NCBI GenBank assembly: GCA_029953675.1
Contig: JAMWBK010000011.1
Coordinates: 1,378,051-1,442,050, forward strand
Length of the DNA: 64,000 nt
Direction of reading: 5' to 3'
Source: Rhodosorus marinus CCMP1338
Taxonomy: Eukaryota > Plantae > Rhodophyta
In this document: positions 22,984 through 64,000 of the stretch, one piece after another
How the letters are laid out: every line of letters starts with the position of its first letter
Numbering within the stretch: the first letter of the stretch is position 1
Notes under the pieces: model-generated
What the model was told of the DNA's origin: nothing
The model's input: only the letters and a program-made list of their open reading frames with translations
Database searches by the model: none
Translations under genes and position numbers: made by a program

Positions 22984-22984
22984 G

Positions 22985-23419: not shown

Positions 23420-23420
23420 C

Positions 23421-38455: not shown

Positions 38456-38456
38456 G

Positions 38457-39605
38457 ACTTTACTAGCATAGGCTGAAGCGCTACGCAAGGCGTGAAGATG
38501 AACTAATAACTAGGGAGGGAAGCATGCAACCCCAGGCGCCGATGGCGCGCCTCGGAAAGCATGTCGCTGGAATATCGCCAAAGGGAGACACTTAAACGCC
38601 TCAAGAGCGCCAAATATTCAGTAGGATGCTCAGCAAAACATTTCCGCAACCACTCTAAACCCGACTTATCGACGTGACCAAAGCTTTCCACAATGAATGG
38701 CTGGAACCGGTGAGAACGACCCTCAGCGCAAGGCAGACTGGCCATGCTCTCAGCATACCGTCGTTCCTTAACTCTTCGAAGGGCTGAAGCCGCGGCGCCC
38801 CGGCGGCGGGCGGCTACGGTGAGGTGGGCGCTGGCCACGGGGCAGGTAATCGCAAGGTCCACATATGTTGAGCGTCTGGCAGCAGCGTCGGAGACGAGGA
38901 GATCGGCTATACAACGGGGCGGTGCAGAGTCCGAGATTGATCTGGGCAGTTCCGACTCAACCTCAACCGTATGCCCTATCCGAGTCAAAAATTCGCTGGG
39001 GATGTACTTGAGGCGAGTGTGACGCCTCGTTCGGAGACCTCTCAACATTCCGCAAGAACCCAGGAAGTGGTAGCCACAAGCGTCAATCCAGCTCTCACAT
39101 CCCTGACAGAAAGACGGCCGATTAGAGTGCCACGGAGCCTGTGGCAAACCGAGATAGATCCGTGCGGCAGAACGGAACTGGAAAGCATCGAGACGATGAC
39201 TCAATGACGACGGTAGAGTGGTTAACCACAAGTGCGAGAGGTGGCCTCCCATGCCGCGGAGACGAGCGGCAGTGGTAGGCGGCGTGAGAGGAGAATTGAG
39301 CATGACTGTGTGAGCGGCACTGTGTTGGCCCCAGGTGAGGCTATGTTGAATCACATCAGTGCGGGAGCTCCACAATCGGCTCAAACCCGGGTAGTCTGCA
39401 ACAGGTGACCCGGGGCTAGCCTCTACGTCATCGGCAAGAACTCGGTCGAGGGGAGAATCCTCAATCGCTTCAGCTCGTCTCCATAACAGCTCCCTCGAGG
39501 AACGAAAACGGGACCGATTTGCGTCCGGCACGGCGTTGCACCTCCTGAACGCGTGTTGAAGACCATCATTAATTGTCAAAAGCGGGGGCGGCAGGTGGCG
39601 ATCCC
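38457..39605 (-). mobile_element. 5'-truncated C-group element (open 358-aa C-terminus at 38503..39579)
   Basis: CQGC..H..C, RTRRH, IADL..YVDL and FQPFIVESFG motifs; 3' UTR ends AGTAAAGTCC. Confidence 0.9.
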
Positions 39606-45427: not shown

Positions 45428-48400
45428 CTACAGTTCCTGCTGCTTGTAGAGGGAAGCGTAGACTCCGTCTGGAATCGACATGAGATCAGCGTGGTTCCCT
45501 GTTTCGACAATTCTACCCTCTGATACAACGGCAATTGTCTCTGCGTTCACCACCGTGGAGAGGCGGTGGGCGATGACAATGGTGGTTCGGCCCACTGCAG
45601 CTTTGCTCAATGCGCTCTGGACAATTCTCTCGGATTTACTGTCAACAGCACTGGTAGCCTCATCCAGGAGGAGAATAGGCGGCTTGCGTACAACGGCTCG
45701 AGCTATCGCGATGCGTTGTCTCTGGCCGCCACTCAGCTTTGCTCCGTGCGCACCGACCTGGGTGTCGTAGCCATGCGGTAGCTTCATCACAAACTCGTGC
45801 GCGTTCGCGAGCTTCGCAGCTTCGACAATCTCATCCTCTGTTACCACTGTACCTTCGGCCTTGCGCAGCCCATGCGCAATGTTCTCACGCACCGTCGTTG
45901 AGAAAAGTTCAGGCTCCTGCGTCACGAAACCGATGTGGTCACGCATCGACGCGGTGTTCCACGCGGGGAGAGGCTTTCCGTCGATTTTAACCTCACCAGC
46001 AGTTGGATCGTAGAACCGTTCAGCGAGCATCGCCACGGTGCTTTTCCCCGCGCCGCTTGGGCCCACAAGAGCAAGCGTTCTCCCCTTCCCGACTTTCACG
46101 CTGAGTCCCTTCAGCACCGTCTGTTCAGGCCTCGCAGGGTACTGGAACACAACATCGTTCAGCTCCACCTCTCCACGGCATTTTTCCATAATCTCTCCTC
46201 CCTCATCCATCGGATCGATGGCTGATTTCATATCTATCAGTCCGAATACTCTTTTAGCGGCGGACCCGGCTTCCGCAGCTTCTGGAAGCAATGTCATCGA
46301 CATTCCAGCCGCAATAGCTCCGAAGGTCAAAGCTGAGCCTGCCCTCAGCCCTTGTAAAAAGTCACACCAACCCCAGTAGATGACTTTCGACATGAACCAG
46401 GCCGTAACGGCATATATCCCATAAGAGCAGAACTGAGTAAACCCATACGCTAGGCCATTGATCAGCGCCTTTCGTTTTCCAATCTGAGCGGGCAGTTCAA
46501 GTTCGGAATCGTAGTCGTTCAGGAACTTTTCGCCTGCTCCTAGAGCCGTCACGGTCTGAACGCAGTCGACAGCGCTGGTCGCGATCGAGTTGGCGGAGGC
46601 GAGCAATTGCGCGAGTTTCGCCGAAAGGCCCCGCATCAACCTCACTTGAATCACTGGGCCCAACGTCATCACCGGCATACAGGCAAGCACGACAAGGGCG
46701 ATCGACCAGCAACTACTGAAGGCTATGATGATTGAGAAGACCAGGATAGAAGTCATATATACATAGTGCATCTGTCGTTCACCAACCGCACCCCTCAGCT
46801 TAGCCACGTCTGGCCCAAGACGAGACGTAAGACTTCCAGCGCTATTCTCGCGTAGATCAAAAAACCCAACGCTCTGACGAATGACTACCTCAAAAGCCAT
46901 GTTCCTCAACCGTTTCATGAGCCTCTCTCCAGCCACCCCGAAGACATACAAGCCAAGGAAATGTGAAAACAGCATAGCGAAGCCAAGTACAGCGAACATG
47001 ATGGTGTAGAATCGAACCTCGCCCTCATCGTTGGTCGTCAACACCAGTACTCCAATCTCCGCCATGATTAAGCTCCATGCTGGCCATAACAGTCCACCGA
47101 TTAACGCGCAGAATATGCCGATGACGAAGTAGGGCCACTCTGGCTTGTTCAAAGACATCGCTCTACGCAAAGCTCCCTTGCGAGCCACATGTTCATTCTC
47201 TTCCTGATCTTGGTCCATCTCTATGGTAGTGGCATCCATCGTCGATGTCGCCGTCGTCGTCGGCTTGCAGACGGAATCACCACATCCTTGGCTCTCTTCA
47301 GCAGTGTACTCCTGGCGGTCAATGGCCGAACCGACGTCGTCCTGTTCCGCATCACTTTCTGAAGCACTCTTCTGCAACTTCACAAGGTTTGAGTAGATAC
47401 CAGTATCGTTAGCGACGAGCTGCTCGTGAGTTCCCTGTTGTCTAATCATGCCGTCCTCGAACACCACAATCTTGTCGGCGTTTCTGATCGTCGAAAGTCT
47501 GTGCGCTATAACGACCACGGTTCTTCCCTCTCGGACGTTGTCCATCGCCTTCTGCACCAGTCGCTCGGATGTGTTGTCCAGGGCGCTTGTCGCCTCGTCG
47601 AATAGTAAGATCTTCGGGTCTCTACTCAGTGCCCGTGCGATAGCAATGCGCTGCTTTTGTCCTCCAGATAACTGAGCTCCTCTGTCGCCTACGATCGTGT
47701 CGTACCCACAGGGCAATTCCATGATAAAATCGTGCGCATTTGCCGCCTTGGCAGCGGCGATGACCTCCTCCATCGACACATTTTCCTGCCTTACCTGCAG
47801 ACCGCCATCTTCTCCCGTATATACCCCAACTTTTCCACCAAGAGCAATGTTGTCCTTGATCGACATGGCGAAAAGCGTTGGAGTCTGTGACACATAGCCA
47901 ATTTGACCCCTCAACCAAGCCACGTTGAACTGGTCTAATTCTATTCCGTCCAATAAAACCGACCCATCCGTAGGGTCGTAGAACCTCTCCAGGAGGTTCA
48001 TCGTCGTCGTCTTTCCGGACCCACTTTCACCAACTAGGGCCACCGTTGATCCTGCTTCAATCGACAAGTTCAGCCCTTTCAGGGCCAAAGCGTCCGATCG
48101 AGAACGGTACCCGAATTTGACGTCTATAAACTCGATGTTTCCCAGCAGTTCAGCGCCAGCTTTCCCCTCCTGGTTGAACGCATCTATCTCACTCTTCCTC
48201 GAGATGATTTCGAAAACTTTTGGTGCTGCCCCGCGTGCTTCGTTGATGGCATTGATAGCCTGACTTCCGTCTCCGAGTGCCATAGCTCCGATTATCACTG
48301 CAAAAATTACGATGAAAACATCCTGACCGAGGATAGTCCCCCCTCGAACGAGCAAACTTCCATACCAGAAAGCGAGGCCATAGGAGCAAATCAGCGTGCA

Positions 48401-49483
48401 ATTGGTGAGACCACTTCCAAGGGCATGCCAGAAAGACTTTCGAATTCCTGCTCGAGTGGCTCCTTCCAGCATATCCGAGTATCGTGCAGCCTCGGTTTTC
48501 TCTAGTCCGCAAGACGCGACAACCCGTATCATCGAGAACGCTTCATAGGCAACCGCACCTGCCTTTGCATACGCAGTCTGGCCATCTACAATCGCTCCTC
48601 CTGCAGTTTGTGCGAACAGATATGAAGTAGCCACCAAAAGCGGTGCCATCGCTAGAATAACCAGCGTTAGCTGCCAACTGTAAATTAATCCGATCAACAT
48701 CCCCCCGATGAACATTGTCACACTCTGCACTGCGGTCGCAACCTTGTCCCCAATGCCGTCCTCAACCACATGAATGTCAAGCGCCGCACCCTGAGCCACT
48801 TCTGCAGAATCCACCTCTTCATACCAACCCATGTCTTGTGACAGTAGCGACCTTAGAAATAACTTCCTCATCCTCCTAGACTGTCTTTGGCTTGTCCACA
48901 TCATTAAATACACTTGCAAGATACCCGCCACAGCGGCCCCGATCCCCATATATACGAATATTAGTGCATGGTCGTTGATCCTTTCAAGTATGGCCTCTGG
49001 ATTTGTCAAGAACCCCTGTACGTCCCCGAATTCACCCATAATCTCCCCCGCTACTATAGTGTACATCGGAGCCAGGACTCCCTGGCATGCTCCAGCCAAC
49101 ACTCCAATTAGGATTAAGAGTCTCTCAACGCCAGTTGAAAATTTGAACAATTCCAGGAATGATACTGATCGTGCCTTTTTAGTTTTTCTTCTCTTCGTCT
49201 TGAAAAGCCCAAAGCACCGCTGAACATCCTCGTACTCCTCCTTCTCCTCCTCCTCCTCCTGCACCTCATCCTCCTCGAAATTTTCCAAGCTCACTGACAC
49301 GTCTGGGGTTACGCTCACGTGTTCAGTTGTGGACGTCCTCAGACGCATTGATCTCCTAAGTTTGGATATTCTCGTCGACAGAGACATCTCGTCCGAGTCA
49401 CTTGAGACTAGATCAGACTCTCTCGTCCCGCTGGACGAAAATAAATCGATTTTAGCAGCTGACATCTCGCGTCTTTCCATCAC
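45428..49483 (-). CDS. ABCB1-like: Full-length ABCB (P-glycoprotein/MDR-type) transporter, 1351 aa
   Basis: TMD-NBD-TMD-NBD layout; Walker A GESGSGKT and GPSGAGKS; signatures LSGGQKQR and LSGGQRQR; Walker B LLFDEATS and LLLDEATS. Confidence 0.95.
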   Translation of the reverse strand: MMERREMSAAKIDLFSSSGTRESDLVSSDSDEMSLSTRISKLRRSMRLRTSTTEHVSVTPDVSVSLENFEEDEVQEEEEEKEEYEDVQRCFGLFKTKRRKTKKARSVSFLELFKFSTGVERLLILIGVLAGACQGVLAPMYTIVAGEIMGEFGDVQGFLTNPEAILERINDHALIFVYMGIGAAVAGILQVYLMMWTSQRQSRRMRKLFLRSLLSQDMGWYEEVDSAEVAQGAALDIHVVEDGIGDKVATAVQSVTMFIGGMLIGLIYSWQLTLVILAMAPLLVATSYLFAQTAGGAIVDGQTAYAKAGAVAYEAFSMIRVVASCGLEKTEAARYSDMLEGATRAGIRKSFWHALGSGLTNCTLICSYGLAFWYGSLLVRGGTILGQDVFIVIFAVIIGAMALGDGSQAINAINEARGAAPKVFEIISRKSEIDAFNQEGKAGAELLGNIEFIDVKFGYRSRSDALALKGLNLSIEAGSTVALVGESGSGKTTTMNLLERFYDPTDGSVLLDGIELDQFNVAWLRGQIGYVSQTPTLFAMSIKDNIALGGKVGVYTGEDGGLQVRQENVSMEEVIAAAKAANAHDFIMELPCGYDTIVGDRGAQLSGGQKQRIAIARALSRDPKILLFDEATSALDNTSERLVQKAMDNVREGRTVVVIAHRLSTIRNADKIVVFEDGMIRQQGTHEQLVANDTGIYSNLVKLQKSASESDAEQDDVGSAIDRQEYTAEESQGCGDSVCKPTTTATSTMDATTIEMDQDQEENEHVARKGALRRAMSLNKPEWPYFVIGIFCALIGGLLWPAWSLIMAEIGVLVLTTNDEGEVRFYTIMFAVLGFAMLFSHFLGLYVFGVAGERLMKRLRNMAFEVVIRQSVGFFDLRENSAGSLTSRLGPDVAKLRGAVGERQMHYVYMTSILVFSIIIAFSSCWSIALVVLACMPVMTLGPVIQVRLMRGLSAKLAQLLASANSIATSAVDCVQTVTALGAGEKFLNDYDSELELPAQIGKRKALINGLAYGFTQFCSYGIYAVTAWFMSKVIYWGWCDFLQGLRAGSALTFGAIAAGMSMTLLPEAAEAGSAAKRVFGLIDMKSAIDPMDEGGEIMEKCRGEVELNDVVFQYPARPEQTVLKGLSVKVGKGRTLALVGPSGAGKSTVAMLAERFYDPTAGEVKIDGKPLPAWNTASMRDHIGFVTQEPELFSTTVRENIAHGLRKAEGTVVTEDEIVEAAKLANAHEFVMKLPHGYDTQVGAHGAKLSGGQRQRIAIARAVVRKPPILLLDEATSAVDSKSERIVQSALSKAAVGRTTIVIAHRLSTVVNAETIAVVSEGRIVETGNHADLMSIPDGVYASLYKQQEL

Positions 49484-51569: not shown

Positions 51570-53561
51570 GTGAAGATGACGTGGAAAAGCGTTTCGGTCG
51601 TTTTGTTGGGGATCGTCTTGCTGTACAGTGAGGTGGTGCAGGGGCAGCAAGTTCCTCCAGGATGTGAGGCCGCTTTACAGTGTGTCTCGCTGGCGTCTAC
51701 AGATTGTATTCTTGCCATGGCGAATGGAAATGATGATGAGGTGGCAGCAGGATGCTGCAATCAGCTAGCAAACTTCTATGCTTGTGTGGGCGATGACTTT
51801 GATAAATGTATTCTGCCGGAATACAGAGTCTTATTGGAGAGCGCCGATGTTACTTGTAGCAACAATGCCCAGATGCAGAGCTGCTTCGAGACCGTCCAGA
51901 TCTGCCTCCCTCTGATGGAAACATCGTGCACGGCCGCTTTGGCTTCGGGAGATTCAGCGCTACTAGCGCCCTGCTGTGGTCAAATCTTATCCACTCAAGC
52001 CTGTTTTGGTGATAATTTTGAACCGTGCCTGTCAAAAGGAATGGTGGAAGTTGCGAATACTGCCGTTACAGTTTGCAAATCACAACCGGCTCCACCAATA
52101 GCGACGCCAACTCCCAGTGACTTTTGCTTGGAGACGCTAGAACACTGCGGAGTTTTTATGACCCCTGAATGCACCCTGTCCCTATTAACCGATGATGAGG
52201 ACGCCATCACAAACTGTTGCAATGCTATCTATTCGACCTATGTCTGTCTTGGCGACAGAGACGCTAAGAAATGCCTAGCTGATGGGATTCTTAACAACAT
52301 GGAAGGTGCTATCGAATTGTGTCATAGCAATCCGACGCCCGTGCCAACGAGCTGTGAAGTCCTCGCCGACTGTGGACAGACAGTGAGGCCCGACTGTATA
52401 ATGGCATTTGCCATGGGTGAGACGAATGACGGTGATTGTTGCCGCGAATTCGGCTTCTTTAGTCGTTGTATCGAGGCGGTCGCCCTGCAATGTCTTCCTC
52501 CAAAGCTGCTTCAGGGAGGACTGGAGGCGGGAATCAAGTGTGACTGCAGTGTTGTGAACGAATGCCTCCAACCTGTCTCAAGCAAGTGCAAGTCTGTTTC
52601 CAACACTCTAGATGAGGCCCAGATTCTCCCCTGCTGCGATGAGATCTCGAATTTTGTTACTTGCCTCGGGGATTCGCGAAGGACCTGCATTCGGAATGAA
52701 CCTGGGCTGGAAAACATGGAAAAGATCTGTGCAAAGACAGAGCCAGATGAGCCAGATGAGCCAGATGAGCCAGATGAGCCAGATGAGCCAGATGAGCCAG
52801 ATGAGCCAGATGAGCCAGATGAGCCAGATGAGCCAGATGAGCCAGATGAGCCAGATGAGCCAGATGAGCCAGATGAGCCAGATGAGCCAGATGAGCCAGA
52901 TGAGCCAGATGAGATGGATGAGCAGGATGAGCAGGATGAGCAGGATATGATGGGAGTGTTTTCTGTGTTCCCCTGCAAGGGTAGAGTTACGTACAAAGTC
53001 TCAATCGCCTGGAGCTGGAGTTCAGCTACTCATCCAAACACATATCCAGAAGAGGGTGGACTGTCGCCCTTCGTGCTATCGAGTCATGGGAAAGACTACA
53101 CCCTGTGGTCGAACCTAGGGTATGCCTCAGGCGGTGTGCAGGCTATTGCAGAGACGGGTAATCCAGATCTCCTCGTCTCTGAACTGAAGGCTGAAAACTA
53201 TCGTAACGTATTCCAAAGGGATGTCGATCCGTCCGGCCCTGCGAGCGGAACGGAAATGAGAGAATATATGATCGAAGTGCACGGTGCTCGCTCGTACATT
53301 TCTGGGATTTCTATGCTAGCTCCAAGTCCGGACTGGTTTAGTGGAATCTCCTCAGTCAATACCTGCGACGAAGATGCGAAAGAATTCATTGAACGAATTG
53401 AGGGCAACCTCGGAGCATACAGCGCTGGGACAGACGCCGGGACAACGTTTACCTCGCCAGATATGCCTCGCAACCCCGGAGAGAGACGTCCGATTGTGTC
53501 CGTGCTTGACGATAATTTTGAAGGAGCTTATGTTGGAGCGTACGTGATCGAAAGGATGTGA
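51570..53561 (+). CDS. Secreted protein with Cys-rich repeats, an (EPD)19 acidic tract and a C-terminal Spondin_N domain, 663 aa
   Basis: Signal peptide; ~6 repeats of the C..L..C...C..CC...Y.C type; Spondin_N motifs GGLSPF..SH, AETG, SMLAPSPDWF and AGTDAG. Confidence 0.85.
   Translation: MKMTWKSVSVVLLGIVLLYSEVVQGQQVPPGCEAALQCVSLASTDCILAMANGNDDEVAAGCCNQLANFYACVGDDFDKCILPEYRVLLESADVTCSNNAQMQSCFETVQICLPLMETSCTAALASGDSALLAPCCGQILSTQACFGDNFEPCLSKGMVEVANTAVTVCKSQPAPPIATPTPSDFCLETLEHCGVFMTPECTLSLLTDDEDAITNCCNAIYSTYVCLGDRDAKKCLADGILNNMEGAIELCHSNPTPVPTSCEVLADCGQTVRPDCIMAFAMGETNDGDCCREFGFFSRCIEAVALQCLPPKLLQGGLEAGIKCDCSVVNECLQPVSSKCKSVSNTLDEAQILPCCDEISNFVTCLGDSRRTCIRNEPGLENMEKICAKTEPDEPDEPDEPDEPDEPDEPDEPDEPDEPDEPDEPDEPDEPDEPDEPDEPDEPDEPDEMDEQDEQDEQDMMGVFSVFPCKGRVTYKVSIAWSWSSATHPNTYPEEGGLSPFVLSSHGKDYTLWSNLGYASGGVQAIAETGNPDLLVSELKAENYRNVFQRDVDPSGPASGTEMREYMIEVHGARSYISGISMLAPSPDWFSGISSVNTCDEDAKEFIERIEGNLGAYSAGTDAGTTFTSPDMPRNPGERRPIVSVLDDNFEGAYVGAYVIERM
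52740..52910 (+). repeat. Perfect coding 9-bp tandem repeat (GAGCCAGAT)19
   Basis: 171 bp, encoding (EPD)19. Confidence 0.95.
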
Positions 53562-53642
53562 GGACGCCATTTCGCCGTTGCTTCTAGGGTTTTCACTTAG
53601 CTTGCTTCGGCTCCAACCGGAAATCCGTTTCATCAACCTTAG

Positions 53643-53671
53643 GTTAGTCTGGGGTTACGTTAGTCTGGGGT
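53643..53671 (+). repeat. Interstitial telomere tract abutting an inverted element 3' end
   Basis: GTTAGTCTGGGGTTACGTTAGTCTGGGGT, ~80 bp after the spondin-gene stop codon. Confidence 0.9.
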
Positions 53672-55626
53672 AACCCCGTAGCCTTTATTGGGCAGCTACC
53701 TAATGTAGCGCATCACACGATCACTACGTACGCACTAACCAAACCTGGACTCCCTGTCCAGGAGTCTCATCTAAATTCTACGTAGGGGAAATATCGGTCT
53801 ATCTGCGCGATCTTTCTCGATCGCGTGCTCAACTAGCGCAGCATTGTGCTGCCACAAAATGCGGTTTAGTTGACCCCTCACCGACGATAGATGGGAGTCA
53901 CGATCATGCAGGTGCGCGCTCGCCGTTCGAAGAAATTCAAGGCTTGCCTGGCCCATTCGACCAAATGTCTCAAAAATGAACGGCACAAGAACAACATCTC
54001 GGTTTTGCCCCCTCAGCACTTCCTTATAATGCAATGCCTTCGCTTGTTCGGCCTGTTTAGCAGCATACCCGCAGTTCCAGCTCGTATGTCTCAACTGATG
54101 TCTTTGAAGTGGCGACGTCACCATCACATCCACCACGTACACGCATCCGCTCGTCGGGTGTCGTGCAACGATGTCTGGGCGAATTCCAGACCCAGCAAAG
54201 AACCCCTCAGGCTCTACTTGTATCTCCGTGAAACTCCAGAGGTGTAACCATCGACTCAGTTCCACCTTTAGCTCGTCGTGCCTCTTGGTTCTTGGTTCGC
54301 ATCCCTGATGAGGTCCTGCAGTGGTGCAGCCGCTGGATCCCACGCACATCGTGTGGTTGCTCGCAGACTGTGCACGTGTGTGACCGCCCTAGTCCTTGTA
54401 GTGGTAGCCCTAGAAGCATCCGCATGCTCCACAACATCTCATTTCGCGTCAACTGCCGCGGCCCTGTACTAGGACAGTCGCGTAGCCAGACCCCGCACCC
54501 CGTTCCAGATGCCGATCGGATCCTCGCCCGGGCTAGGTCGTCCAGTGTTGAATCTCCAGTAAGCTCCTCAAAGGCTTGTCGGTGACACTCTCGAGAGAGC
54601 GTTTTTTGAATCGGACCGTCAAACCTTTGGGTACCTCCTGTGTCTTCCGCTGTGCCTTCCGCCGAGTCCTCCAGCGGTTGCCAATCGGCCAGCCTCTGGA
54701 TCCGTGCACTGGTCGTCGCTGGCAAACGTCGTCTAATTGCGCGACTTGCCTCCACCAGTTGCCAAGCAAGTCCATCAGTTGTCCATCCAAGTCGCACCCG
54801 TGGCAGCGATTCTCCTTGTGCTGCCGCAATACACTCCTGGGAAAGCCGTTCGAGGTAGCGTGATTCAGTGGTGTTCTCTTGCAGGCTTTGTTTCCACCCT
54901 GCATGGAAGGCAACTGGTTGAATTCTCGTGCGCGTGGCAAAGCCAAGTCCTCCCCATCGACATGGGAGTCGAATCTGTTTCTTAACCGCTGCAGCCTCAC
55001 GTGCGGTGATATCCTGGTGTTGACATAGGCCTCCACACAAGCCTTCAAGCTCCGACAGGGCGATCGCGTCCGCCTCGCGGGCAACGGTACGTCCAAGGGG
55101 GTACGCCAGCCCACGTGTATGATAATCGAGCCTTGTGCCTGCGCAGTACCGAAAGAGGGCCAGCTTGACTTGGAGTTCAGCATCGGGGAGTCGCTGAATC
55201 GATTTGACCAGGTTCGCATGTCGCGTTTGAATAGCTCGACATTCTTCTTCCGCAAACACCCGAGTTCCAATTGGTATGGAGTACAACGTAGTCCCGGCGC
55301 GAGTCACTAGAATCTCAGGGATATCCAGGTTAATCACCCTCGGCGTGTCCAGTCGTGGTGCGTATAGAATGCACTTCGATCGCTGTAGTTTGGCTCCAAT
55401 CCCTGGCAGAGCTTCCTGGCTCCACGTCAATGCGCCTTTCAGGATCTCGAGGTCCCCTACTAGGGAGATGTCGTCGTGTACCGCGGCGAGGGTAAGTGTT
55501 GGAAACCTTCGCCGCAGACCACGCAGGAATGGGGCTAGAGCAAGGGCATGTAGCACTGGCCCTAAAGGGTCTCCTTGTTGGACTCCAGTGCGTGCTTCCA
55601 GGGAGAACCGATCCATAATACGGGGG
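53670..55626 (-). mobile_element. 5'-truncated T5 element, one frameshift
   Basis: ORFs 54207..55616 (GVQQGDP, AVHDD) and 53771..54349 (IRPDIVARH..VVDV); 3' end AATAAAGGCTACGGGGTTAC. Confidence 0.9.
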
Positions 55627-55644
55627 ACCCCAGACTAACGTAAC
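55627..55644 (-). repeat. Inverted interstitial telomere tract between T4 and T5
   Basis: ACCCCAGACTAACGTAAC. Confidence 0.9.
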
Positions 55645-56827
55645 TGTAAACTTTACTCGGCAACTGCCTAATGCAGCGCAACACTAATTCTATCAAGATC
55701 TAGGGAAAAGTGTGTGTTTAACCCCGTCTCCCGGGGTCTCTAGCTACGATAAAAAAGAAAAAGAAAAATAAGGGATCAGCGGCTGGTCCGACTGATCCAC
55801 GCGCAAAGCCCCTAACGCGAGCTCTGCGTTCCCTGCCCAGAGTGTTCTGTTTAGTTGAGCCCGCACGTTGCTCAACTCGTACTGCTTAGTTAGCATGTGC
55901 CCACAGCCCTCACGGAGAAAGTCTTGGGTCATCTGCCCTGTTCTGCCGAAGGTTTCTATCGCAATCGGAATCAGTTTCTCATCTGGATGCTCTGTCACCA
56001 TCGCCTCCTTGTAGTGTGCAAGTTTCCAACGCTCCGCCTGTTTTGCTGCATAACCATTGTTGTCTTTGCTGTTGGCTAGGTGTCTCGCCTGTAGGGGTGA
56101 CACCACCGTCACATCGATCGCAAATCGTTGCCAGGTTCGAGGGTGTATAGCTACCAAGTCAGGTCGTAGATTCGAGTTCGTGAAGTAGTCTGTAGGTTCT
56201 TGCTGAACATCTCTGAACTGCCATCTGTTAAGCCAACGCGCCAGCTCAGTGCAGAGCTCATCATGTCGCCGTTGCCAGAGCCCAGTCGAGGTCTGACAAT
56301 ATGGAATGTTTGTACACCGTTCGTACGGTGTGTACTATTACACGTAGTACACCTCTCCGTCGTCCGCAGTCCCGGAATCGGGAGTCCCAGCAATTGTCGG
56401 ATATTCAGGTGCATGCCTCTCCCACTCAATTTTCGGGGTCCGAATTGTGGCAAATCTCTTAGCCAGACACCTGAACCTGCTCCTGCAGCGGAACGGATTA
56501 GGGCACGATGTTCCGGGTCGAGTAAGGGATCCGTGACCAGTCGGGTGAAAGCAGAAAGGTGTGCCTCTCTTGAGAGGGTCTGTTGTAAGGAACCTTGCTT
56601 CACCGCAGACTGGTCAGGGGGGGAATTTGCTGCAGGGGCAGCAGTCAGGTACGTGGGGTTGAGGAGCTGCCTTATTCGGGGGCTGGTTTCCGGTCTCAGT
56701 CTCCCCCTAATGGCTGTAGTTGCCACTAGGATTTGGGAGGGGAGGTCGTCAGTAGAGCGGTGTAGTGTCCTCGGGGGGTTGAGCAGCTGTGGTGTAGCTT
56801 CCTGGGTGCGTTCTAACAATTTTTGTA
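55641..56827 (-). mobile_element. 5'-truncated T4 element
   Basis: ORFs 56151..56918 and 55744..56157; 3' end AGTAAAGTTTACAGTTAC. Confidence 0.9.
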
Positions 56828-56829
56828 TG

Positions 56830-57747
56830 GGGCTCGGAAACGAGACTTGACTACACCCTAAGGACAGTGGCTTACCACTACGGCAGAAGTTTAGCACGAG
56901 AAGCGGACTACAACACACGACTACAGTTGGAAAGGCTTCTAGGCTGTCTACAAACAGTTTGGGGTCACTGATCCCTTATTTTTCTTTTTTATCGTAGCTA
57001 GAGACCCCGGGAGTCGGGGTTAAACACGCACATTTTCCCTAGATCTGGGGTTACGTTAGTCTGGGGTGGATTCAAACCTTTGCAGCTAACAAGGGCTATT
57101 GGCCCCACCTACAAAAATTGTTAGAACGCACCCAGGAAGCTACACCACAGCTGCTCAACCCCCCGAGGACACTACACCGCTCTACTGACGACCTCCCCTC
57201 CCAAATCCTAGTGGCAACTACAGCCATTAGGGGGAGACTGAGACCGGAAACCAGCCCCCGAATAAGGCAGCTCCTCAACCCCACGTACCTGACTGCTGCC
57301 CCTGCAGCAAATTCCCCCCCTGACCAGTCTGCGGTGAAGCAAGGTTCCCTACAACAGACCCTCTCAAGAGAGGCACACCTTACTGCTTTCACCCGACTGG
57401 TCACGGATCCCTTACTCGACCCGGAACATCGTGCCCGAATCCGTTCCGCTGCAGGAGCAGGTTCAGGCGTCTGGCTAAGAGATTTGCCACAATTCGGACC
57501 CCGAAAATTGAGTGGGAGAGGCATGCACCTGAATATCCGACAATTGCTGGGTCTCCCGATTCCGGGACTGCGGACGACGGAGAGGTGTACTACGTGTAAT
57601 AGTACACACCGTACGAACGGTGTACAAACATTCCATCATTGTCAGACTTCGACTGGGCTCTGGCAACGGCGACATGATGAGCTCTGCACTGAGCTGGCGC
57701 GTTGGCTTAACAGATGGCAGTTCAGAGATGTTCAGCAAGAACCTACA
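56830..57747 (+). mobile_element. Plus-strand T4-type fragments separated by a telomere tract at 57044-57067
   Basis: ETRLDYTLRTVAYHYGRSLAREAD at 56836-56910; 3' UTR piece at 56966-57046; 57110-57747 is the reverse complement of 56191-56827. Confidence 0.85.
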
Positions 57748-57811
57748 GGGTTACGTTAGTCTGGGGTTACGTTAGTCTGGGCTGGGGTTTGTCTGGGGTT
57801 ATCTGGGGTTA
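57748..57811 (+). repeat. Two canonical telomere repeats followed by three 10-nt-period variants
   Basis: GGGTTACGTTAGTCTGGGGTTACGTTAGTCTGGG, then CTGGGGTTTGT-CTGGGGTTAT-CTGGGGTTA. Confidence 0.9.
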
Positions 57812-57863
57812 TTGGATAAGGTTCGAAATTAAGTTTGTAGGTTTGGTTCGCCTGGGGTAAAAT

Positions 57864-59102
57864 ATGCCAAACACTGGCACTTCCCCTTCGTTTGGGGAGG
57901 GGAATTCGAAGAATACCGGTGCAATGAGCGGAATGCTGCCTGCCTCTCCAATTGCTGAACGAGAGGACGGGCATGGGTCACATGATGGACTACAAGCGAC
58001 TACTTTACGCCCAGAAGAACCGTGCCAGGAGGGGAGTCGGACAGAGCCTTCTACGTCATCCTCTCCCGCTAACACGTTCCTCCACCAACTTCGAAGCTAC
58101 GATCAGTGCTATCACGCCCTCGGAATTGGGGAGCAGGACATCGCGAACTTCTACAAAGCAGTCTTCAATCTCTACTCGCGAATTAACAGTACCACAGAGA
58201 TACATAATGTCACCAGCCGCCTCACGGAACTTGCACAGAAGCCCCACATGTGGCAAGCTTCTGCACAGACTTCGAATCCCTCGGGAGCTTCGGCGCATCA
58301 CCGGCCGACGGCGGTGGTCAATCAACTTGCGGCCGGAACGGGCTTCAATCAAGTTCCAGTCGGGACAGGTGTCCCTGCGGGTGTCCGGTTTGAGACGGCT
58401 TTCCCGGCCCTTGGGAATGACACCCCCAGACCCACCTACGCGGCGGTTTCGGCGGTAGAAGTACCAGAGAACGGTGTAGAGACACCCATCCGCACCATGC
58501 GAAGGCCTGGGCCGCAGACGCAACATGCCGCCCTGAAGCAGTTACACGCCACAGTGGGAGGGGCCAGCTGGGGCCCTGAGACCACGCCAGTGCTTGTTAC
58601 CCTCCGAAATATCCGTCCCCCACGACAGGATGAGGTGGCTGCTTCTGACTTCACTACGGTCCTCTGCCGGGCGTTGGGCATTCCCGGCTCGTATGTGGCG
58701 CATTTGGACTTTATCTCTTCACACGTGAGCCTCGTGTGCCACCCTGATGCAATTCCTCTTCTCCAAAGCGCAATCAGCCGGGGTGTGTTCCGGACTGGGA
58801 TTTTCGGATCCTTTACCATGCGACACCCCGATCGACAGGTGAGCCTGTACACCGGGCACGGTTTAGAGGCGGATAACCTGCTGGGGTTCAACGAGCGGCA
58901 ACGACTCGCCGGCGGAGATGTCAGGGCTCAAACGCTGAGACGAGCGATCGAGCAGATCATACGCATCCGCGCGCGGCTGAGCCGTCGACATCTCTCGTTT
59001 ACAACTCTCGCCCGAGTGCACGAGATGCTGGACCAACGGCTTGAAAAGTTACAAGCCCTTCAACAGCAACCTGCGGTATCCAGGAGAGCGCGGAACCCCT
59101 AA
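57864..59102 (+). CDS. T1 ORF1 (gag-like; probably extends to 59446 in another frame)
   Basis: 412-aa ORF. The central region is homologous to D-group ORF1. An overlapping frame is open from 59045 to 59446 and encodes a peptide conserved at 25300-25370 (minus strand). Confidence 0.75.
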   Translation: MPNTGTSPSFGEGNSKNTGAMSGMLPASPIAEREDGHGSHDGLQATTLRPEEPCQEGSRTEPSTSSSPANTFLHQLRSYDQCYHALGIGEQDIANFYKAVFNLYSRINSTTEIHNVTSRLTELAQKPHMWQASAQTSNPSGASAHHRPTAVVNQLAAGTGFNQVPVGTGVPAGVRFETAFPALGNDTPRPTYAAVSAVEVPENGVETPIRTMRRPGPQTQHAALKQLHATVGGASWGPETTPVLVTLRNIRPPRQDEVAASDFTTVLCRALGIPGSYVAHLDFISSHVSLVCHPDAIPLLQSAISRGVFRTGIFGSFTMRHPDRQVSLYTGHGLEADNLLGFNERQRLAGGDVRAQTLRRAIEQIIRIRARLSRRHLSFTTLARVHEMLDQRLEKLQALQQQPAVSRRARNP

Positions 59103-59445
59103 CGACTGCAGCCGCACCAAACGCAGCCGCTGAAGCCTCGTCGTCTCCGGACGATGCACAGGCAGCCTGTGGGACTGTTGCCACTCAGGGTGACTCCGGT
59201 GGAACATCCCAAGTACCGCAGGATGTGGAAGAAGAGGACAATCCCCATGCGGAACTCTCGTGCAACTTGCCGGAACCTCCTCAACTTAAGCGCTCGCGCC
59301 GGTCTGCCAACGGATCTAGCACGGATGCAGAAATGACACCAGCTCCCCTCGACCCCACACCGAGCGAGAATGGACTACAACCTGAAACTGCAGCCAATAC
59401 AAACCCGTCGGTTCAGCAGGAAGCGCAGGACAACGAGCAATCATA

Positions 59446-62400
59446 ATGCCGTCCAGACGCAGGGGACGTAAACGCCCACGAGAAGAGCCTCTGTTCTTCT
59501 CTGACCGGGAGGCCTGGATTTGCCGCTGGAACGCTTTCGTAGCTGAGATCACGGAGGAGGGGAGGCATTGGACGCGCATCACACATTGCCCGGTGCCCAC
59601 ACGACGCTTCGTGCCCCGAGCACACGTTTCTACATGGAGCCGGCTTCTTCGGGCTGCCCTCGAGCTTTCTCTGGACGCGACAGCACCTCCATTAGCGAGC
59701 CTGCTTCTCGTCGGCCTTCCGGGTCTGGTCCTGGGCCACTCCACCCTTGACACAGGGGTACAGGTCGCACATGTACTAGAAGGAGAGTTCCAGCGGGTCT
59801 GGACGGCCCTTGAGGAGAAAGCCGCCTCAATGAAACCCCCACCTACACCACACGGTGCCGAAGACGTTCGTCGACGAGTCGATGGCCGCCGCAAACAAGC
59901 ACTTAAACTAGCACGACTCGGCCGCCTCTCGGATGCTGCAAGAAGACTCGAGGCCACCGAAATGGCGCCTTTCACAGCGGCTACCTGGCGGCAACTACAA
60001 CAGCTCTTTCCGAGCCCCGCCAGTGTGGATTCACCGGTGGAGATTGTGGAAGCCCTCCAAGGCCTACTCACGACGGCCAACGACACACTGAAGAGGCGGT
60101 GGGATCCAAAAACGGCTGCCGACGAAGGCCTCCTCTCAATCGTGGCACGACTACCTCAAGGGACGAGCCCTGGACCGAGTGGAATGCGCGCGGAACATTT
60201 GCAAGGGGCGAACCAACAGACTCAGGTAGCACTGATTCGGGTCTTGCGCCAACTCGCCACCGCGCCCGGGCGATTCTCACCCCTTCTGCTACGAGCCTTG
60301 CGTAGCAGTAGACTTCTGCCTTTCTCGAAGCCAGCACAGGGGGGTAACTCCCAGGCCAAGGCAGGGATCCGCCCAATAGGCGTGCCGGAGGTCCTACGCA
60401 AAGTGGCAACTCAGTGGGCGCTGCGAGCGGTGATGGACCGGGTCCGCGAGCTGTTGGTGCCGTTGCAGCTGGGAATCGGGGTCAGCGGTGGCTGTGAACG
60501 GTCACTGCACGCCATCCAGGCCCACCTGTCATGTGAACCAGACTCGGTTGCACTTCGACTGGACCTCGAGAACGCCTTTAACCGCATTGACAGGCGAATT
60601 GCCAAGAAACTGGTGGCCCAGCACTTCCCTGAGCTCACAGCGGTGTATAGGCTCGGATATGGAGGCGATGGGGAAACACCGACGCTTTGTGGATGGCGGA
60701 CGACGCAAGAAGACAACCACCTGCACAAGGACAGACTGACGCTGCAAGCAGAAACCGGAGTACAACAAGGCGACCCTTTAGGTCCGGTGCTACATGCGCT
60801 CTCCCTGGCCCCTTTTCTCAAGGCACTCAGCAACAAGTTTCAGGGAGTCACGATCGTCGCCATCCATGACGACATCACTCTGGTCGGCGCATTGCCTATA
60901 TTGAAGGAGGCTCTCCAATGGGGACAGACCCTGCTACCGTGCCTTGGAGCCCGCCTGCAGCTCAGCAAATGCAGCCTTTATGGTCGATCCCTCACCACTA
61001 CACGCTTGGTGAACCGTGCGATTCCCGGCGTGCAAGTGACTAGGGAAGGCCTCACAATCCACTCCATCCCCATCGGCACTCGGCAGTACATCGAGCACGA
61101 GTGTAGACGGCTGCAGAACAAACACGAGACGCTGTTCAAGGAGATTTCGAGCCTGCCAACCGATGAACTGCCTATCCAGCTTGCGCTTTACAGGTATTGC
61201 GCTGAAACGAGGTTGGATTACACCTTGCGATGCCTTGCCTACCCGTTTGGACGAGCTCTGGCCAGGGAAGCGGACAGTATGAGCAGATACCACTTAGAGG
61301 TCTTGTTTGGTGGCCTCTGCACGACGGCCTTGGTCGAGGATGAGCTGATACACCCGGTCAACGAGCAGATTTCGTTGCCCTGCCGATGGGGCGGATTGGG
61401 GTTCGCGACCCGTGCAAGAATACAGCCGATTGCGTTCTTCTCGGCCTGGGCGCAGACCCTGAGAGACCATGCGGGTCAGTGGCCCTATATAACGGAGGTG
61501 GAGCGACAGGTCAGGCAAGGTGGCGACATACACATCAGCCACCTAGGCCGACTGCAGGTGTCAACGGAGACGATCGGTGAGCAAATCCGCGCGTCTAGTC
61601 GTGCTATAGAGCGGAGACTGTGCCCAGACACGGCGCCGCGGATCCGGAGACTGGCCAAGCTGCCCGAATTGAGAGACGAAGCCGCACCTGAAGTAGCGGA
61701 CTCCCCTCGCGATTGGAACCATGGTTCAATACAACAAACCCTCTCTAGGGAGGCACACCATCGCGCGTTCCAACGTTTGGTCGGCAACGAGGGCGTTTCG
61801 CATGAACACCGTGCAAGAATCCGATCGGCGGCCGGCTCGGGTTCGGGGGTATGGCTGCGGGAACTACCGTTGCTAGAGCCGAGAAAGCTGGACTCACAGG
61901 AATTGCAGGTAAATGTTCGACAACTGCTGGGGCTGCCGATTCCGGGGTTGCGGACAACGGAGCAGTGCACCAGTTGCCGTAGGAAACATGGCCCAAATGG
62001 GGTGCAACGATTTCAACACTGTCCAACATCGACGGGACTATGGCAGAGACGGCACGACGAGCTCTGTACGGAGCTAGGGAGATGGCTCAACCGATGGAAT
62101 TTTCTTGACATACAGCAAGAACCGCAGAGGTATTTTGAGAATTACCAGCTGCGACCAGATATCGTGGCGACCCATCCAAAGACCTTTCAAAAGTACGCGA
62201 TCGATGTGACGGTGATTTCACCGCTACAGGAAAAGTACATAAGGCGTGGCAGTGCAGAAAACGGGTATGCAGCGAAACTGGCGGAGAACTACAAGCTCGC
62301 GCACTATAAAGAGGCGATGAGTGTGGAAAAGCCCGAGGAGAAGTTCATCCCGATCGCGATAGAGACCTTTGGGCGGAGCGGGAGGTTGACGCAAGACTTT

Positions 62401-62583
62401 TTGCGGGACAGTTGTAAACACTTGTTGCATCGAGATGAGGAGCTGAGGGATGCACGATCCCAGTTAAACAGGATCCTATGGCAGGGCAACGCGGCGATTG
62501 CGCTTGGCGCTCTACGTGCGGACCAGTTGGAGAACCCACTGGTTCCTGTTTTTTCTTTTGAACGTAGCATGAGACCCCGGTAG
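59446..62583 (+). CDS. T1 ORF2: RT, zinc knuckle and restriction-like endonuclease, 1045 aa
   Basis: GIRPIGVPE, QLGIGVSGG, LDLENAFN, GVQQGDPLGP, AIHDD, LPCRWGGLG, CTSC..H..C, RRHD, RPDI..AIDV and FIPIAIETFG. Confidence 0.95.
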   Translation: MPSRRRGRKRPREEPLFFSDREAWICRWNAFVAEITEEGRHWTRITHCPVPTRRFVPRAHVSTWSRLLRAALELSLDATAPPLASLLLVGLPGLVLGHSTLDTGVQVAHVLEGEFQRVWTALEEKAASMKPPPTPHGAEDVRRRVDGRRKQALKLARLGRLSDAARRLEATEMAPFTAATWRQLQQLFPSPASVDSPVEIVEALQGLLTTANDTLKRRWDPKTAADEGLLSIVARLPQGTSPGPSGMRAEHLQGANQQTQVALIRVLRQLATAPGRFSPLLLRALRSSRLLPFSKPAQGGNSQAKAGIRPIGVPEVLRKVATQWALRAVMDRVRELLVPLQLGIGVSGGCERSLHAIQAHLSCEPDSVALRLDLENAFNRIDRRIAKKLVAQHFPELTAVYRLGYGGDGETPTLCGWRTTQEDNHLHKDRLTLQAETGVQQGDPLGPVLHALSLAPFLKALSNKFQGVTIVAIHDDITLVGALPILKEALQWGQTLLPCLGARLQLSKCSLYGRSLTTTRLVNRAIPGVQVTREGLTIHSIPIGTRQYIEHECRRLQNKHETLFKEISSLPTDELPIQLALYRYCAETRLDYTLRCLAYPFGRALAREADSMSRYHLEVLFGGLCTTALVEDELIHPVNEQISLPCRWGGLGFATRARIQPIAFFSAWAQTLRDHAGQWPYITEVERQVRQGGDIHISHLGRLQVSTETIGEQIRASSRAIERRLCPDTAPRIRRLAKLPELRDEAAPEVADSPRDWNHGSIQQTLSREAHHRAFQRLVGNEGVSHEHRARIRSAAGSGSGVWLRELPLLEPRKLDSQELQVNVRQLLGLPIPGLRTTEQCTSCRRKHGPNGVQRFQHCPTSTGLWQRRHDELCTELGRWLNRWNFLDIQQEPQRYFENYQLRPDIVATHPKTFQKYAIDVTVISPLQEKYIRRGSAENGYAAKLAENYKLAHYKEAMSVEKPEEKFIPIAIETFGRSGRLTQDFLRDSCKHLLHRDEELRDARSQLNRILWQGNAAIALGALRADQLENPLVPVFSFERSMRPR

Positions 62584-62669
62584 CGGGGTTGTTGTGAGTG
62601 ATTCCCTAGATAGCAATCGGCTTAGTGTTACGTCGCATTAGGCGACTGCCCAATAAAGCTCACGGTTAC
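62571..62669 (+). other. T-group structured 3' UTR: two hairpins, (A/G)TAAAG and terminal GGTTAC
   Basis: ACCCCG-GTAG-CGGGGT; GTCGC-ATTAG-GCGAC at 62632-62646, with compensatory variants in other subfamilies. Confidence 0.75.
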
Positions 62670-62730
62670 GTTAGTCTGGGGTAACGTTAGTCTGGGGTTA
62701 CGTTAGTCTGGGGTTACGTTAGTCTGGGGT
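62664..62730 (+). repeat. Telomere tract, about 4 repeats (one GTAAC variant)
   Basis: Direct sequence match to the terminal array. Confidence 0.95.
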
Positions 62731-63555
62731 GGGGGATCAGGAGGGGGTACTTGGCTGCGAGACTTGCCAAGGAAACACGGACGCGGCCTAAGTAGCGGAG
62801 AACTGAACCTGAGCCTTCGACAACTGTTGGGATTACCCCTGCCGGGTGTACGAATACTTAGTACGTGTACGATATGTTCCCAACCACACGACGCTGCAGG
62901 CATTCAACGCCTTCACCACTGCACCAGCTCTACCGGCAGTTGGACAATTCGGCATAACATGGTCAGGGACGCCCTGGCGACAGTGCTGAGACAATGGCGA
63001 CTAGAAGTGACAATAGAACCGACCGGACACTACCAAGGCAGTCGGCTTCGGCCTGACATTCTAGCCCGACACCCACGAACAGGCAAGCTCTACGTGATCG
63101 ATGTGAAGGTGACCTCGCCTTTGCAAAGAACACACCTCCACAAAGCGTCTTGGGAGACCGGGTATGCGGCACGGAAAGCGGAAAAGTTTAAAGAGTCCAA
63201 ATACCGTGACAGTATCGGAGAACATAACGACGACATCTTCGTCCCCTTCTGCCTGGAAACATTTGGGCAGATGGGACAACAAGCGAGTGAGTTCCTCAAG
63301 GAAGCGACTATACACCTGGATCAGCGGGCAACGCAAGTAAGTGAGGCTCGGGCGATCTTGAACCGCACTTTGTGGAAAGGAAACGCTATCCTTGCCACCC
63401 AGGCACGTCGTGTCGACGAAGCAGACTATGACATCGTCCCTATCTTAGAACGTAGCCACACAACCCATTAGGGGTTTCCTTGCTGACCAATAGGATCCTT
63501 ATTGCTTCTTAATGGGCTCCAATAGGGAGTTCTTCAGTAAAGTGTACGCGGTTAC
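62731..63555 (+). mobile_element. 5'-truncated T6 element (zinc knuckle, RLE and 3' UTR)
   Basis: ORF 62764..63471 has CTIC..H..C, RHN and RPDIL..VIDV; ends AGTAAAGTGTACGCGGTTAC. Confidence 0.9.
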
Positions 63556-64000
63556 GTTAGTCTGGGGTTAGTCTACGTTAGTCTGGGGTTACGTTAGTCT
63601 GGGGTTACGTTAGTCTGGGGTTACGTTAGTCTGGGGTTACGTTAGTCTGGGGTTACGTTAGTCTGGGGTTACGTTAGTCTGGGGTTACGTTAGTCTGGGG
63701 TTACGTTAGTCTGGGGTTACGTTAGTCTGGGGTTACGTTAGTCTGGGGTTACGTTAGTCTGGGGTTACGTTAGTCTGGGGTTACGTTAGTCTGGGGTTAC
63801 GTTAGTCTGGGGTTACGTTAGTCTGGGGTTACGTTAGTCTGGGGTTACGTTAGTCTGGGGTTACGTTAGTCTGGGGTTACGTTAGTCTGGGGTTACGTTA
63901 GTCTGGGGTTACGTTAGTCTGGGGTTACGTTAGTCTGGGGTTACGTTAGTCTGGGGTTACGTTAGTCTGGGGTTACGTTAGGGTTGGCTGTTAGTCTGTG
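63550..64000 (+). repeat. Telomeric array (GTTAGTCTGGGGTTAC)n, about 27 units
   Basis: Near-perfect 16-nt G-rich tandem array running to the sequence end; one variant unit at the start and a degenerate last ~20 nt. Confidence 0.9.

Follow-up and report, generated by a model that had tools for sequence, protein, structure and literature searches.

Layout of the chromosome end

We analysed a stretch of 64,000 nucleotides (the window) from the genome of Rhodosorus marinus CCMP1338, a red alga of the Stylonematophyceae, in which a group of long interspersed nuclear elements (LINEs), termed T elements here, lies next to tandem copies of the 16-nt unit GGGGTTACGTTAGTCT. Base 64000 of the window is the last base of contig JAMWBK010000011.1 (1,442,050 bp); the ABC-transporter gene at window positions 45428-49480 matches contig positions 1,423,478-1,427,530 exactly, at an offset of 1,378,050. 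According to the genome paper, the nuclear genome (GCA_029953675.1) is Nanopore based and has 17 contigs, 13 of them large; 12 contigs bear at least one telomere, and 6 of these have one at both ends; in its main text and supplements, the telomere sequence is not stated and retrotransposons are not discussed.

The window closes with a long array of the 16-nt unit, the G-rich strand of which runs 5' to 3' outward, as it should at a right-hand chromosome end. At 2 or fewer mismatches, the window contains 42 occurrences of the 16-mer, compared with 0.02 expected by chance. Inward of the terminal array are found, in this order, a truncated copy (T6), a short tract of repeats, a full-length copy (T1) with two open reading frames (ORFs), and another short tract (Table 1). 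An initial annotation, made from the letters of the window, had placed exactly this succession at a chromosome end, and each part was recovered at its coordinates. The same annotation regarded T1 as near-intact, which holds for ORF2 but not for ORF1, since the latter is frameshifted in the assembly. The tract preceding T1 is a healed break, because the copy upstream of it (57064-57744) stops within ORF2. T1 is the sole full-length copy and thus permits no comparison, so that its 5' boundary is uncertain within 57782-57815. As to the arrays themselves, variant units occur at their inner edges (62664-62730 and 63550-63600), one of them, GGGGTAACGTTAGTCT, having one T fewer; in the terminal array, unit 2 is lengthened by an inserted AGTCT (5 nt), and the other units are uniform.

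Table 1. Features of the window and of two further loci. Healed breaks are sites where telomere repeat joins broken or non-element DNA; RT, reverse transcriptase; RLE, restriction-like endonuclease; UTR, untranslated region.
Feature	Position	Strand	Description
Interstitial telomere tract	57748-57781	+	2.1 units of GGGGTTACGTTAGTCT; joined to T copy broken in ORF2 at aa 893
T1, whole element	57782-62663	+	4.9 kb; ORF1 and intact ORF2
T1 5' end and 5' UTR	57782-57863	+	opening ~34 nt, to ~57815, are degenerate telomere-like repeats (CTGGGGTTTGTCTGGGGTTATCTGGGGTTATTGG)
T1 ORF1	57864-59102	+	412 aa as assembled
Conserved ORF1 tail	59046-59446	+	-1 frame only, 133 codons; three-frame translation
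T1 ORF2	59446-62583	+	1045 aa, no stops; N-terminal helical region, RT, linker, CCHC, RLE
RT domain	60361-60981	+	ORF2 aa 306-512; Pfam RVT_1
CCHC motif and RLE domain	61966-62325	+	ORF2 aa 841-960; motif reading
Hairpin 1	62573-62590	+	GACCCCG-GUAG-CGGGGUU, across ORF2 stop codon
T1 3' UTR	62584-62663	+	80 nt; terminates in ...CCCAATAAAGCTCAC
Hairpin 2	62632-62646	+	5-bp stem, 5-nt loop, 17 nt short of 3' end
Telomere tract between T1 and T6	62664-62730	+	4.2 units
T6	62731-63549	+	5'-truncated; equivalent of ORF2 aa 802-1041 and own 3' UTR
Terminal telomere array	63550-63981	+	26.7 units, 97% matches; final 19 bases of contig (to 64000) noisy
Healed break	14346	+	repeat begins CTGGGG...
Healed break	18086 and 57044		repeat begins TCTGGGG...; broken T ORFs/UTRs
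Healed break	53643	+	repeat begins GTTAGTCT..., just after Spondin_N gene
Healed break	57748	+	repeat begins GGGTTACG..., inside broken ORF2
Healed break	L038 10244		repeat begins GGGGTTACGT, after unique DNA
Healed break	L044		repeat begins TTAGTCTGGGG
Older part of terminal T array	53639-57747	.	healed break just past Spondin_N gene (53643-53671), then inverted block
Two T copies in inverted block	3' ends 53678, 55646	-	within 53639-57747
Telomere unit	57044-57067		in older terminal array, before T fragment 57064-57744
Internal T block	4210-9407	+	3' ends 6669, 8032, 8654; repeat follows each in register
Internal T block	17580-23420	+	3' ends 18007, 19807, 20173, 22977; all in register; ~one-unit tracts between
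Subfamily-A copy, 5'-truncated	36674-38391	-	intact 535-aa ORF; GGTTAC after 3' end
Host genes	10031-13961 (-), 27928-28854, 31294-33930, 45428-49483 (-), 51570-53561	- where marked	single open frames

ORF2 encodes an R2-like reverse transcriptase and endonuclease

The central part of ORF2 is a LINE-type RT, which matches Pfam RVT_1 (E = 5.2e-9) and contains QGDPL (aa 441) and HDD (aa 474). A CCHC motif and a PD-(D/E)XK endonuclease of the RLE type are both located C-terminal to the RT and have been kept in the window copies and in homologues; in T1 they read C841-x2-C844-x13-H858-C859-x9-RHD(869-871)-x20-E892-x10-RPD(903-905)-x14-D920-VTV. The initial protein search with ORF2 returned distant matches only, the best at 27%. 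Among the sequences of the Protein Data Bank (PDB), the top phmmer match was R2 (9nl2_A), which aligns over both the RT and the CCHC/RLE regions, with RHD opposite RHN, RPD opposite KPD, and D-V-T-V in common. An AlphaFold2 model of ORF2, built from 21 sequences, reached a predicted local distance difference test (pLDDT) score of 79.9 and a predicted template modeling score of 0.79, and its N-terminus is all-helical. When this model was submitted to Foldseek, the top matches were the R2 proteins R2Tg and R2Bm, with E values of 1e-20 to 1e-22 over ~1000 columns (9nl3_A, 2.8e-22; 8gh6_A, 4.4e-21), in structures of R2 caught initiating target-primed reverse transcription. Human L1 ORF2p ranked behind R2 (~1e-15) in a comparison in which R2 and L1 were the only solved structures available in the PDB, and the RT core fold matches both. 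ORF2 is an R2-like LINE protein with RT, CCHC motif, and RLE, and the RLE-type non-long-terminal-repeat identity first assigned to T1 is borne out by domain, alignment, motifs, and fold. An apurinic/apyrimidinic endonuclease (APE) domain was not found; neither ORF2 aa 1-300 nor ORF1 contained a zinc finger (Pfam, E <= 0.1), and no Myb domain was detected.

ORF1 and its junction with ORF2

ORF1 has no Pfam domain. It contains a possible unit resembling an RNA recognition motif (beta-alpha-beta-beta-alpha, aa 243-305), followed by C-terminal coiled-coil helices; its structure model was of low confidence (pLDDT 40.7) and too poor to search. The sole database homologue is the R. marinus hypothetical protein NDN08_004843, which is 66% identical and encoded on a different contig, and a weak similarity (E = 0.009) was noted to ORF1 of a distant relative, the P0001 element. 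Alignment of T1 ORF1 with this paralogue (P0171) revealed a premature stop in T1, caused by a frameshift near codon 405; the acidic conserved tail of the protein persists in the -1 frame, where its TAA stop and the ATG of ORF2 overlap (TAATG at 59444-59448). The paralogue is read through in a single frame into the acidic tail. TAATG also precedes ORF2 in the paralogous copy of locus L038, situated ~15 kb inward of an end of contig JAMWBK010000007.1, a second chromosome end; this copy has a different frameshift, and the overlap is thus seen in 2 subfamilies in total. The frame of the paralogue and the TAATG in both copies therefore point to an ancestral ORF1 of ~527 aa that was joined to ORF2 by a UAAUG overlap. 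A stop/start overlap of this sequence has been shown to couple the translation of ORF1 and ORF2 in the silkworm telomeric element SART1.

T elements end in one register of the telomere repeat

In all subfamilies but T6, the 3' terminus reads ...GCTGCCCA(A/G)TAAAG-NNN-AC, whereas T6 has only the AGTAAAG box and a hairpin in common with the others. We compiled every accessible intact T 3' end (A[AG]TAAAGNNNAC), 18 in total, namely, 13 in the window, 1 in L038, and 4 in JGI sample 3300016967. In 17 of them (13, 1, and 3, respectively), the terminal ...AC is followed by 0 to 4 nt (G, GG, CG, AG, or GGGG) and then by TTACG(TTAGTCT...), that is, by the repeat in one register. Seven healed breaks, in contrast, join the repeat in other registers, of which there are at least four (Table 1), which shows that the repeat can be present without an element 3' end. 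Because the target is both long and asymmetric, its junctions directly reveal the register of insertion, which is hard with repeats of 5 to 7 nt. Insertion specific for the telomere repeat had been proposed in the initial annotation, and this mapping of 3' ends over the window, L038, and the JGI sample supports it. Upstream of the 5'-truncated copies, 8 of 12 flanks end in ...GTCTGGGGT, ...GGGGTT, or ...GGGGTTA, and both cleavages would therefore lie within the GGGGTTA block. The tracts between elements nearly always amount to about one unit (6 to 24 nt), typically one unit plus ~4 nt, compared with 27 units in the terminal array.

Short 3' repeats occur in many LINEs, and the 16-nt repeat could accordingly be the elements' own 3' tandem tail and not a telomere, the terminal array being the expanded tail of the last element. 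Each window tract of at least two units indeed adjoins T sequence, the terminal array comes directly after T6, at its 3' end, and was seen at one contig end only, and the genome paper never gives the telomere sequence. The repeat nevertheless joins non-element or broken DNA in varied registers (53643; L038 10244; 18086, 57044, and 57748), the 27-unit array at the contig end is homogeneous with its G-rich strand outward, and telomeres have been reported on 12 contigs; taken together, a tail is a very unlikely explanation. The same junctions bear on the idea that T elements lack target specificity and merely pile up in gene-poor subtelomeres, where the repeats would stem from the healing of breaks by telomerase. 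This would require breaks exactly at intact 3' termini in 17 of 18 cases, each healed in a single register, whereas recognizable healed breaks begin in at least four and the RLE domain is under purifying selection; even though breakage, healing, and inversion have clearly shaped this subtelomere and the interstitial tracts are very short, we consider this reading highly improbable. The T elements are thus probably two-ORF RLE LINEs (R2/CRE type) that are site-specific in the 16-nt telomere repeat (GGGGTTACGTTAGTCT)n.

Two candidate origins of the constant junction were rejected. Alignment by telomerase, primed by ...TTAC, predicts ...TTAC-GTTAGTCT, and the junction observed is ...TAC-GG-TTACG; microhomology through which the RNA 3' end might anneal with the target was ruled out by the same mismatch between predicted and observed junctions.

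At least seven subfamilies of T elements with a constant 3' end

With the T1 proteins as queries, tblastn retrieved homologous coding sequence amounting to ~24 kb, distributed over six blocks and both strands of the window. By their final 432 nt, twelve copies can be sorted into seven groups with mutual identities of 40 to 81%, where the initial annotation had counted at least six divergent subfamilies. The members of subfamily A are mutually 96-97% identical, and T6 represents a divergent subfamily with 42% amino acid identity to T1 and an intact RLE region (D-V-K). The ratio of nonsynonymous to synonymous substitutions between subfamilies was 0.07-0.11 in three long frameshift-free alignments, in which synonymous sites are saturated; the subfamilies therefore diverged as functional elements, under purifying selection, and their description as a radiation is supported. 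No copy has long terminal repeats; starts range from aa 183 of ORF1 to the 3' UTR and the 3' terminus is constant, a combination that is the signature of target-primed reverse transcription. An exhaustive HMMER search returned 6653 relatives at E <= 1e-3. Close ones (62-81% identity) are MMETSP transcriptome transcripts, some of which are named Rhodosorus marinus in UniRef, and relatives in Pyropia vietnamensis and Closterium sp. are ~32-34% identical. In locus L039 of JGI sample 3300016967, a copy 98.6% identical to T1 loses homology exactly at position 62663, which fixes the 3' boundary of T1. At positions 1-1365 of the same contig (Ga0186194_101909), upstream of this fragment, one ORF encodes both a CCHC zinc knuckle (CYKCQEEGHVQQDC) and a KTYA motif resembling that of ORF1; the contig may have arisen as a chimera in transcript assembly or may represent an element that is nested or recombinant.

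How many of these copies arose by retrotransposition can be asked, since most of the arrays might go back to a few old insertions that were multiplied by recombination, segmental duplication, and break-induced replication, with a minor role for retrotransposition. The 96-97% identity among subfamily-A copies is compatible with such an origin, as are internal tandem duplications (8265-8504 and 20939-21348), an inverted block at 53.7-57.0 kb, and copies of a second LINE family (family II, see below) that are common to the two chromosome ends at 96-97% identity. Duplication of a few insertions does not, however, account for seven subfamilies with differing truncation points and junction nucleotides (G, GG, CG, AG, and GGGG), for the existence of related transcripts, or for the 98.6% identical T1-like copy in another dataset, and as the main source of the arrays it has a very low probability. 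Recombination and duplication probably contribute to the arrays but do not replace targeted insertion.

Traces of rearrangement are seen at several sites. At two head-to-head junctions (53643-53700 and 14346-14375), a plus-strand tract (...GTCTGGGGT) runs straight into AACCCC, and at 53672 the reverse complement of a T 3' end follows. The pattern looks like a telomere-telomere fusion or a fold-back, and the former junction identifies 53.7-57.0 kb as an inverted block. The tandem duplications just mentioned (124 nt and 207 nt) lie inside T copies, and a 74-nt repeat is present in 3 copies at 36041-36260, in surroundings without detected T homology; both point to local rearrangement after insertion.

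3' UTR features, orientation, and a proposed mechanism

Two hairpins are conserved around the 3' UTR (Table 1). Hairpin 1 is present in the minimum-free-energy and centroid folds of all 7 subfamilies and shows compensatory changes. For hairpin 2, 95.4% of the cells are paired, 3 of its 5 pairs show compensatory changes, and none of 500 shuffles matched the observed covariation. An invariant A(A/G)TAAAG box is located 6 to 8 nt from the 3' end. No known Rfam family was found in the T 3' UTRs. The two hairpins and the box are likely handles for the RT.

The sense strand of the T elements is continuous with the G-rich strand, the 3' end of the terminal copies faces the chromosome end, and more repeats are found beyond it. 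It follows that the primer would be a 3'-OH in the C-rich strand and not the G-strand overhang. Attachment to the very chromosome end, in which the 3' overhang serves as primer without any nick (the HeT-A/TART mechanism, with a MoTeR-like orientation), would also yield terminal arrays of elements arranged head to tail, and the shortness of the tracts (about one unit) might reflect joining to very short telomeres. Priming by the G strand, however, would put the 3' end of the element on the centromere side, and all terminal copies have the opposite orientation with repeats beyond; the intact and conserved RLE argues for nicking as well, so that end attachment is extremely unlikely.

Judging from the junctions, insertion into the telomere repeat could proceed as follows. 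The RLE would nick the C-rich strand at or beside 5'-CGTAAC/C-3' (slash, nick), and the freed 3'-OH would prime reverse transcription of the element RNA, which would be recognized through the two hairpins and the A(A/G)TAAAG box of its conserved 3' UTR. The G strand would be cut a few bases off, after GGGGT, GGGGTT, or GGGGTTA, giving rise to a target duplication of 0 to 6 bp, and incomplete reverse transcription would produce the 5' truncations. ORF2 would probably be translated by termination-reinitiation at the UAAUG overlap. Repeated insertion, breakage, healing by telomerase, and inversion may then have created the subtelomeric mosaic.

A number of points weigh against this account of the T elements. 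(i) The sole exception among the 18 ends is the T1-like fragment in L039, in which the 3' end is followed by AGTCT and then by unrelated, non-telomeric sequence. (ii) Some copies are possibly segmental duplicates, so that the tally of 17 out of 18 overstates independence, and the specificity data cover two chromosome ends and one other dataset only. (iii) No N-terminal zinc finger or Myb domain that would account for target recognition was detected. (iv) T1 itself may not be autonomous, given its frameshifted ORF1; this frameshift is either real or a Nanopore indel error, an error of the assembly being possible. (v) The folding z-scores of the 3' UTRs are unremarkable (-0.9 to -3.2), so that the case for RNA structure rests on conservation and not on stability. 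(vi) The mechanism is read from junctions and not from observed nicking or retrotransposition.

One may ask whether the T elements are an integrated part of Rhodosorus chromosome-end biology rather than mere telomere parasites, which we consider unlikely. The tracts of about one unit, compared with a 27-unit array, could mean that the elements prefer the innermost repeat, or telomeres that have become critically short, as insertion sites. If this were the case, they would provide back-up end extension and buffering beside telomerase, as has been proposed for SART and TRAS; and the odd 16-nt repeat and the specificity of the element endonuclease would have co-evolved.

A second RLE LINE family and the genome-wide LINE load

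A second family of RLE LINEs (family II), 24-32% identical to T1 ORF2, is found at 1632-4079 (+), 38457-39595 (-), and 42128-45161 (+) of the window and at 16817-21288 of L038. It contains CxxC...RRH...D motifs, and its 3' ends do not abut the telomere repeat. The abutment on one and the same repeat that was initially noted for the T subfamilies consequently does not extend to family II. Another 16-nt tandem repeat, CTATGCTAGTAAAGTC, is present in 2.1 copies at 36622-36654, and a related motif, GCTAGTAAAGTC, accompanies two copies of family II close to their 3' ends, at 38430-38470 (-) and ~45380. This repeat may be family II's own 3' tail or its target.

In the supplement of the genome paper, CRE/SLACS elements account for 4036 pieces, 2.82 Mb, and 9.04% of the genome, in 24 RepeatModeler LINE/CRE families, and R2/R4/NeSL elements for 0.06% (17.8 kb). 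The LINE coding homology in the window (24 kb) thus exceeds what was assigned to R2/R4/NeSL in the entire genome. A CRE load of 2.8 Mb seems to be more than the chromosome ends alone would hold, extrapolating from the window; together with the non-telomeric family II, this indicates that the T group is only part of the LINE/CRE load of this alga. The label 'CRE' itself is best taken as provisional, as it derives from endonuclease motif spacing and, as its only direct support, from the automated RepeatModeler/RepeatMasker label. The SLACS/CRE consensus given in the FoTeR paper is C-x1-3-C-x7-8-H-x3-4-C-x9-10-RHD/N-x19-33-E-x9-21-R/KPD-x12-14-D/E. The RHD-to-D spacing of T1 (x9, x20, x10, x14) fits this consensus, whereas its CCHC motif differs (C-x2-C-x13-H-C or C-x2-C-x3-H-x10-C). 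Since the RHD-to-D spacing fits R2 too, it does not discriminate between the clades.

Distant relatives were inspected for the 16-nt repeat. The contigs of P0001 and P0003 carry two-ORF elements without it; downstream of the P0003 ORF2, (TGTGGGCCCCT)4 is present at a contig end (L003 5390-5432). Metagenome relatives of the C-terminal domain comprise 34 loci with 22-34% identity, some of them near short tandem repeats, none of which was informative on the 16-nt repeat, and a metagenome scan for two exact telomere units gave 0 matches. Upstream of the ORF2 relatives in L022, L023, and L025, (CTAAACC)3, a plant-type telomere unit, is found at 496-517.

Host genes and other features between the T blocks

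Apparently intact single-frame host genes lie between the T blocks, within 10 to 54 kb of the chromosome end (Table 1). Among their products are an ABC transporter, a CEMIP-type beta-helix protein, and a Spondin_N protein, in which a 9-nt repeat at 52740-52941 encodes an (EPD)n tract; two further products look secreted and have no Pfam domain. Just past a T-like fragment with its end at 9407, an incomplete U4 spliceosomal small nuclear RNA is found at 9707-9782 (+) (Rfam RF00015, 50.8 bits, model positions 1-75), of which only the 5' half is present; it may be a pseudogene that was truncated or a chimeric retrocopy generated by a LINE.

Comparison with known systems

LINEs specific for telomeres are rare, and work on them has been confined to few lineages, namely, APE-type elements in insects, RLE-type elements in fungi, and elements in Giardia. 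Telomere-specific LINEs and RLE LINEs with a fixed target are already known as kinds. The novelty lies in the host lineage, in the 16-nt target, and in an R2-type endonuclease being combined with a SART1-like orientation and UAAUG coupling. As the initial annotation had surmised, the searchable literature contains neither the 16-nt repeat nor an earlier description of telomere-targeted LINEs in red algae; queries with 10-mers of the repeat, in every permutation and on both strands, returned only primer coincidences. In a broad survey, red algal telomeres outside the Cyanidiales were left unresolved. The data presented here add a red alga to the hosts of telomere LINEs, define a 16-nt telomere unit for a group with poorly characterized telomeres outside the Cyanidiales, and account for some of the LINE/CRE content (9%), for which the genome paper offers no more than a table. 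The T elements offer a useful comparison for the evolution of target specificity in RLE LINEs and are a possible source of an endonuclease and RT with specificity on the 16-bp scale.

Several conclusions can be drawn from a comparison with individual elements. (i) MoTeR1 of Magnaporthe oryzae, FoTeR of Fusarium oxysporum, and Cnl1 of Cryptococcus, telomere-targeted RLE LINEs assigned to the CRE clade, share with the T elements the order RT, CCHC motif, RLE (the last two C-terminal), insertion in telomere repeats, head-to-tail arrays with short telomere tracts in between, 5' truncation, truncated relics healed by new telomere, and telomere-like variant repeats at the 5' end of the full-length copy. 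They differ from the T elements, whose two ORFs overlap at TAATG, whose target is 16 nt long and not TTAGGG, and which inhabit a red alga and not a fungus; several FoTeR proteins carry an N-terminal C2H2 zinc finger, which was not detected in T ORF2. The 5' ends of MoTeR are always nearest to the chromosome end, whereas it is the 3' ends of the T elements that face it, and FoTeR 3' ends are followed by TAACCC (C strand), whereas T 3' ends are followed by the G strand. The analogy to MoTeR and Cnl1 drawn initially is thus valid for the type of element and its telomeric target but breaks down over orientation. (ii) R2 of Bombyx mori, zebra finch, and turtle resembles the T elements in its RT, CCHC motif, and RHD/RPD/D-V-T-V residues, in its site specificity, and in having a structured 3' UTR and no poly(A). 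Unlike the T elements, it relies on one ORF, in which zinc-finger and Myb motifs for DNA binding are found at the N-terminus, and is targeted to 28S rDNA, and the identity between them is 13-15%. (iii) SLACS and CZAR are also two-ORF elements. For the trypanosomatid elements CRE1/CRE2, SLACS, and CZAR, the published RLE consensus accommodates the RHD-to-D spacing of the T elements, as R2 does; their target is the spliced-leader gene, and in the T elements the His directly precedes the last Cys instead of following the x7-8-H-x3-4-C pattern. (iv) SART1Bm of Bombyx mori, which sits in (TTAGG)n, likewise has its sense strand continuous with the G-rich strand and a fixed position in the repeat, and it nicks the C-rich (bottom) strand, the one in which the T elements would be nicked. 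Both have two ORFs with a UAAUG overlap, and a stem-loop in the 3' UTR is used for recognition in SART1. The two are set apart by the N-terminal AP-like endonuclease, poly(A) end, and R1-clade membership of SART1Bm, compared with the C-terminal RLE of the T elements and DNA copies that lack poly(A).

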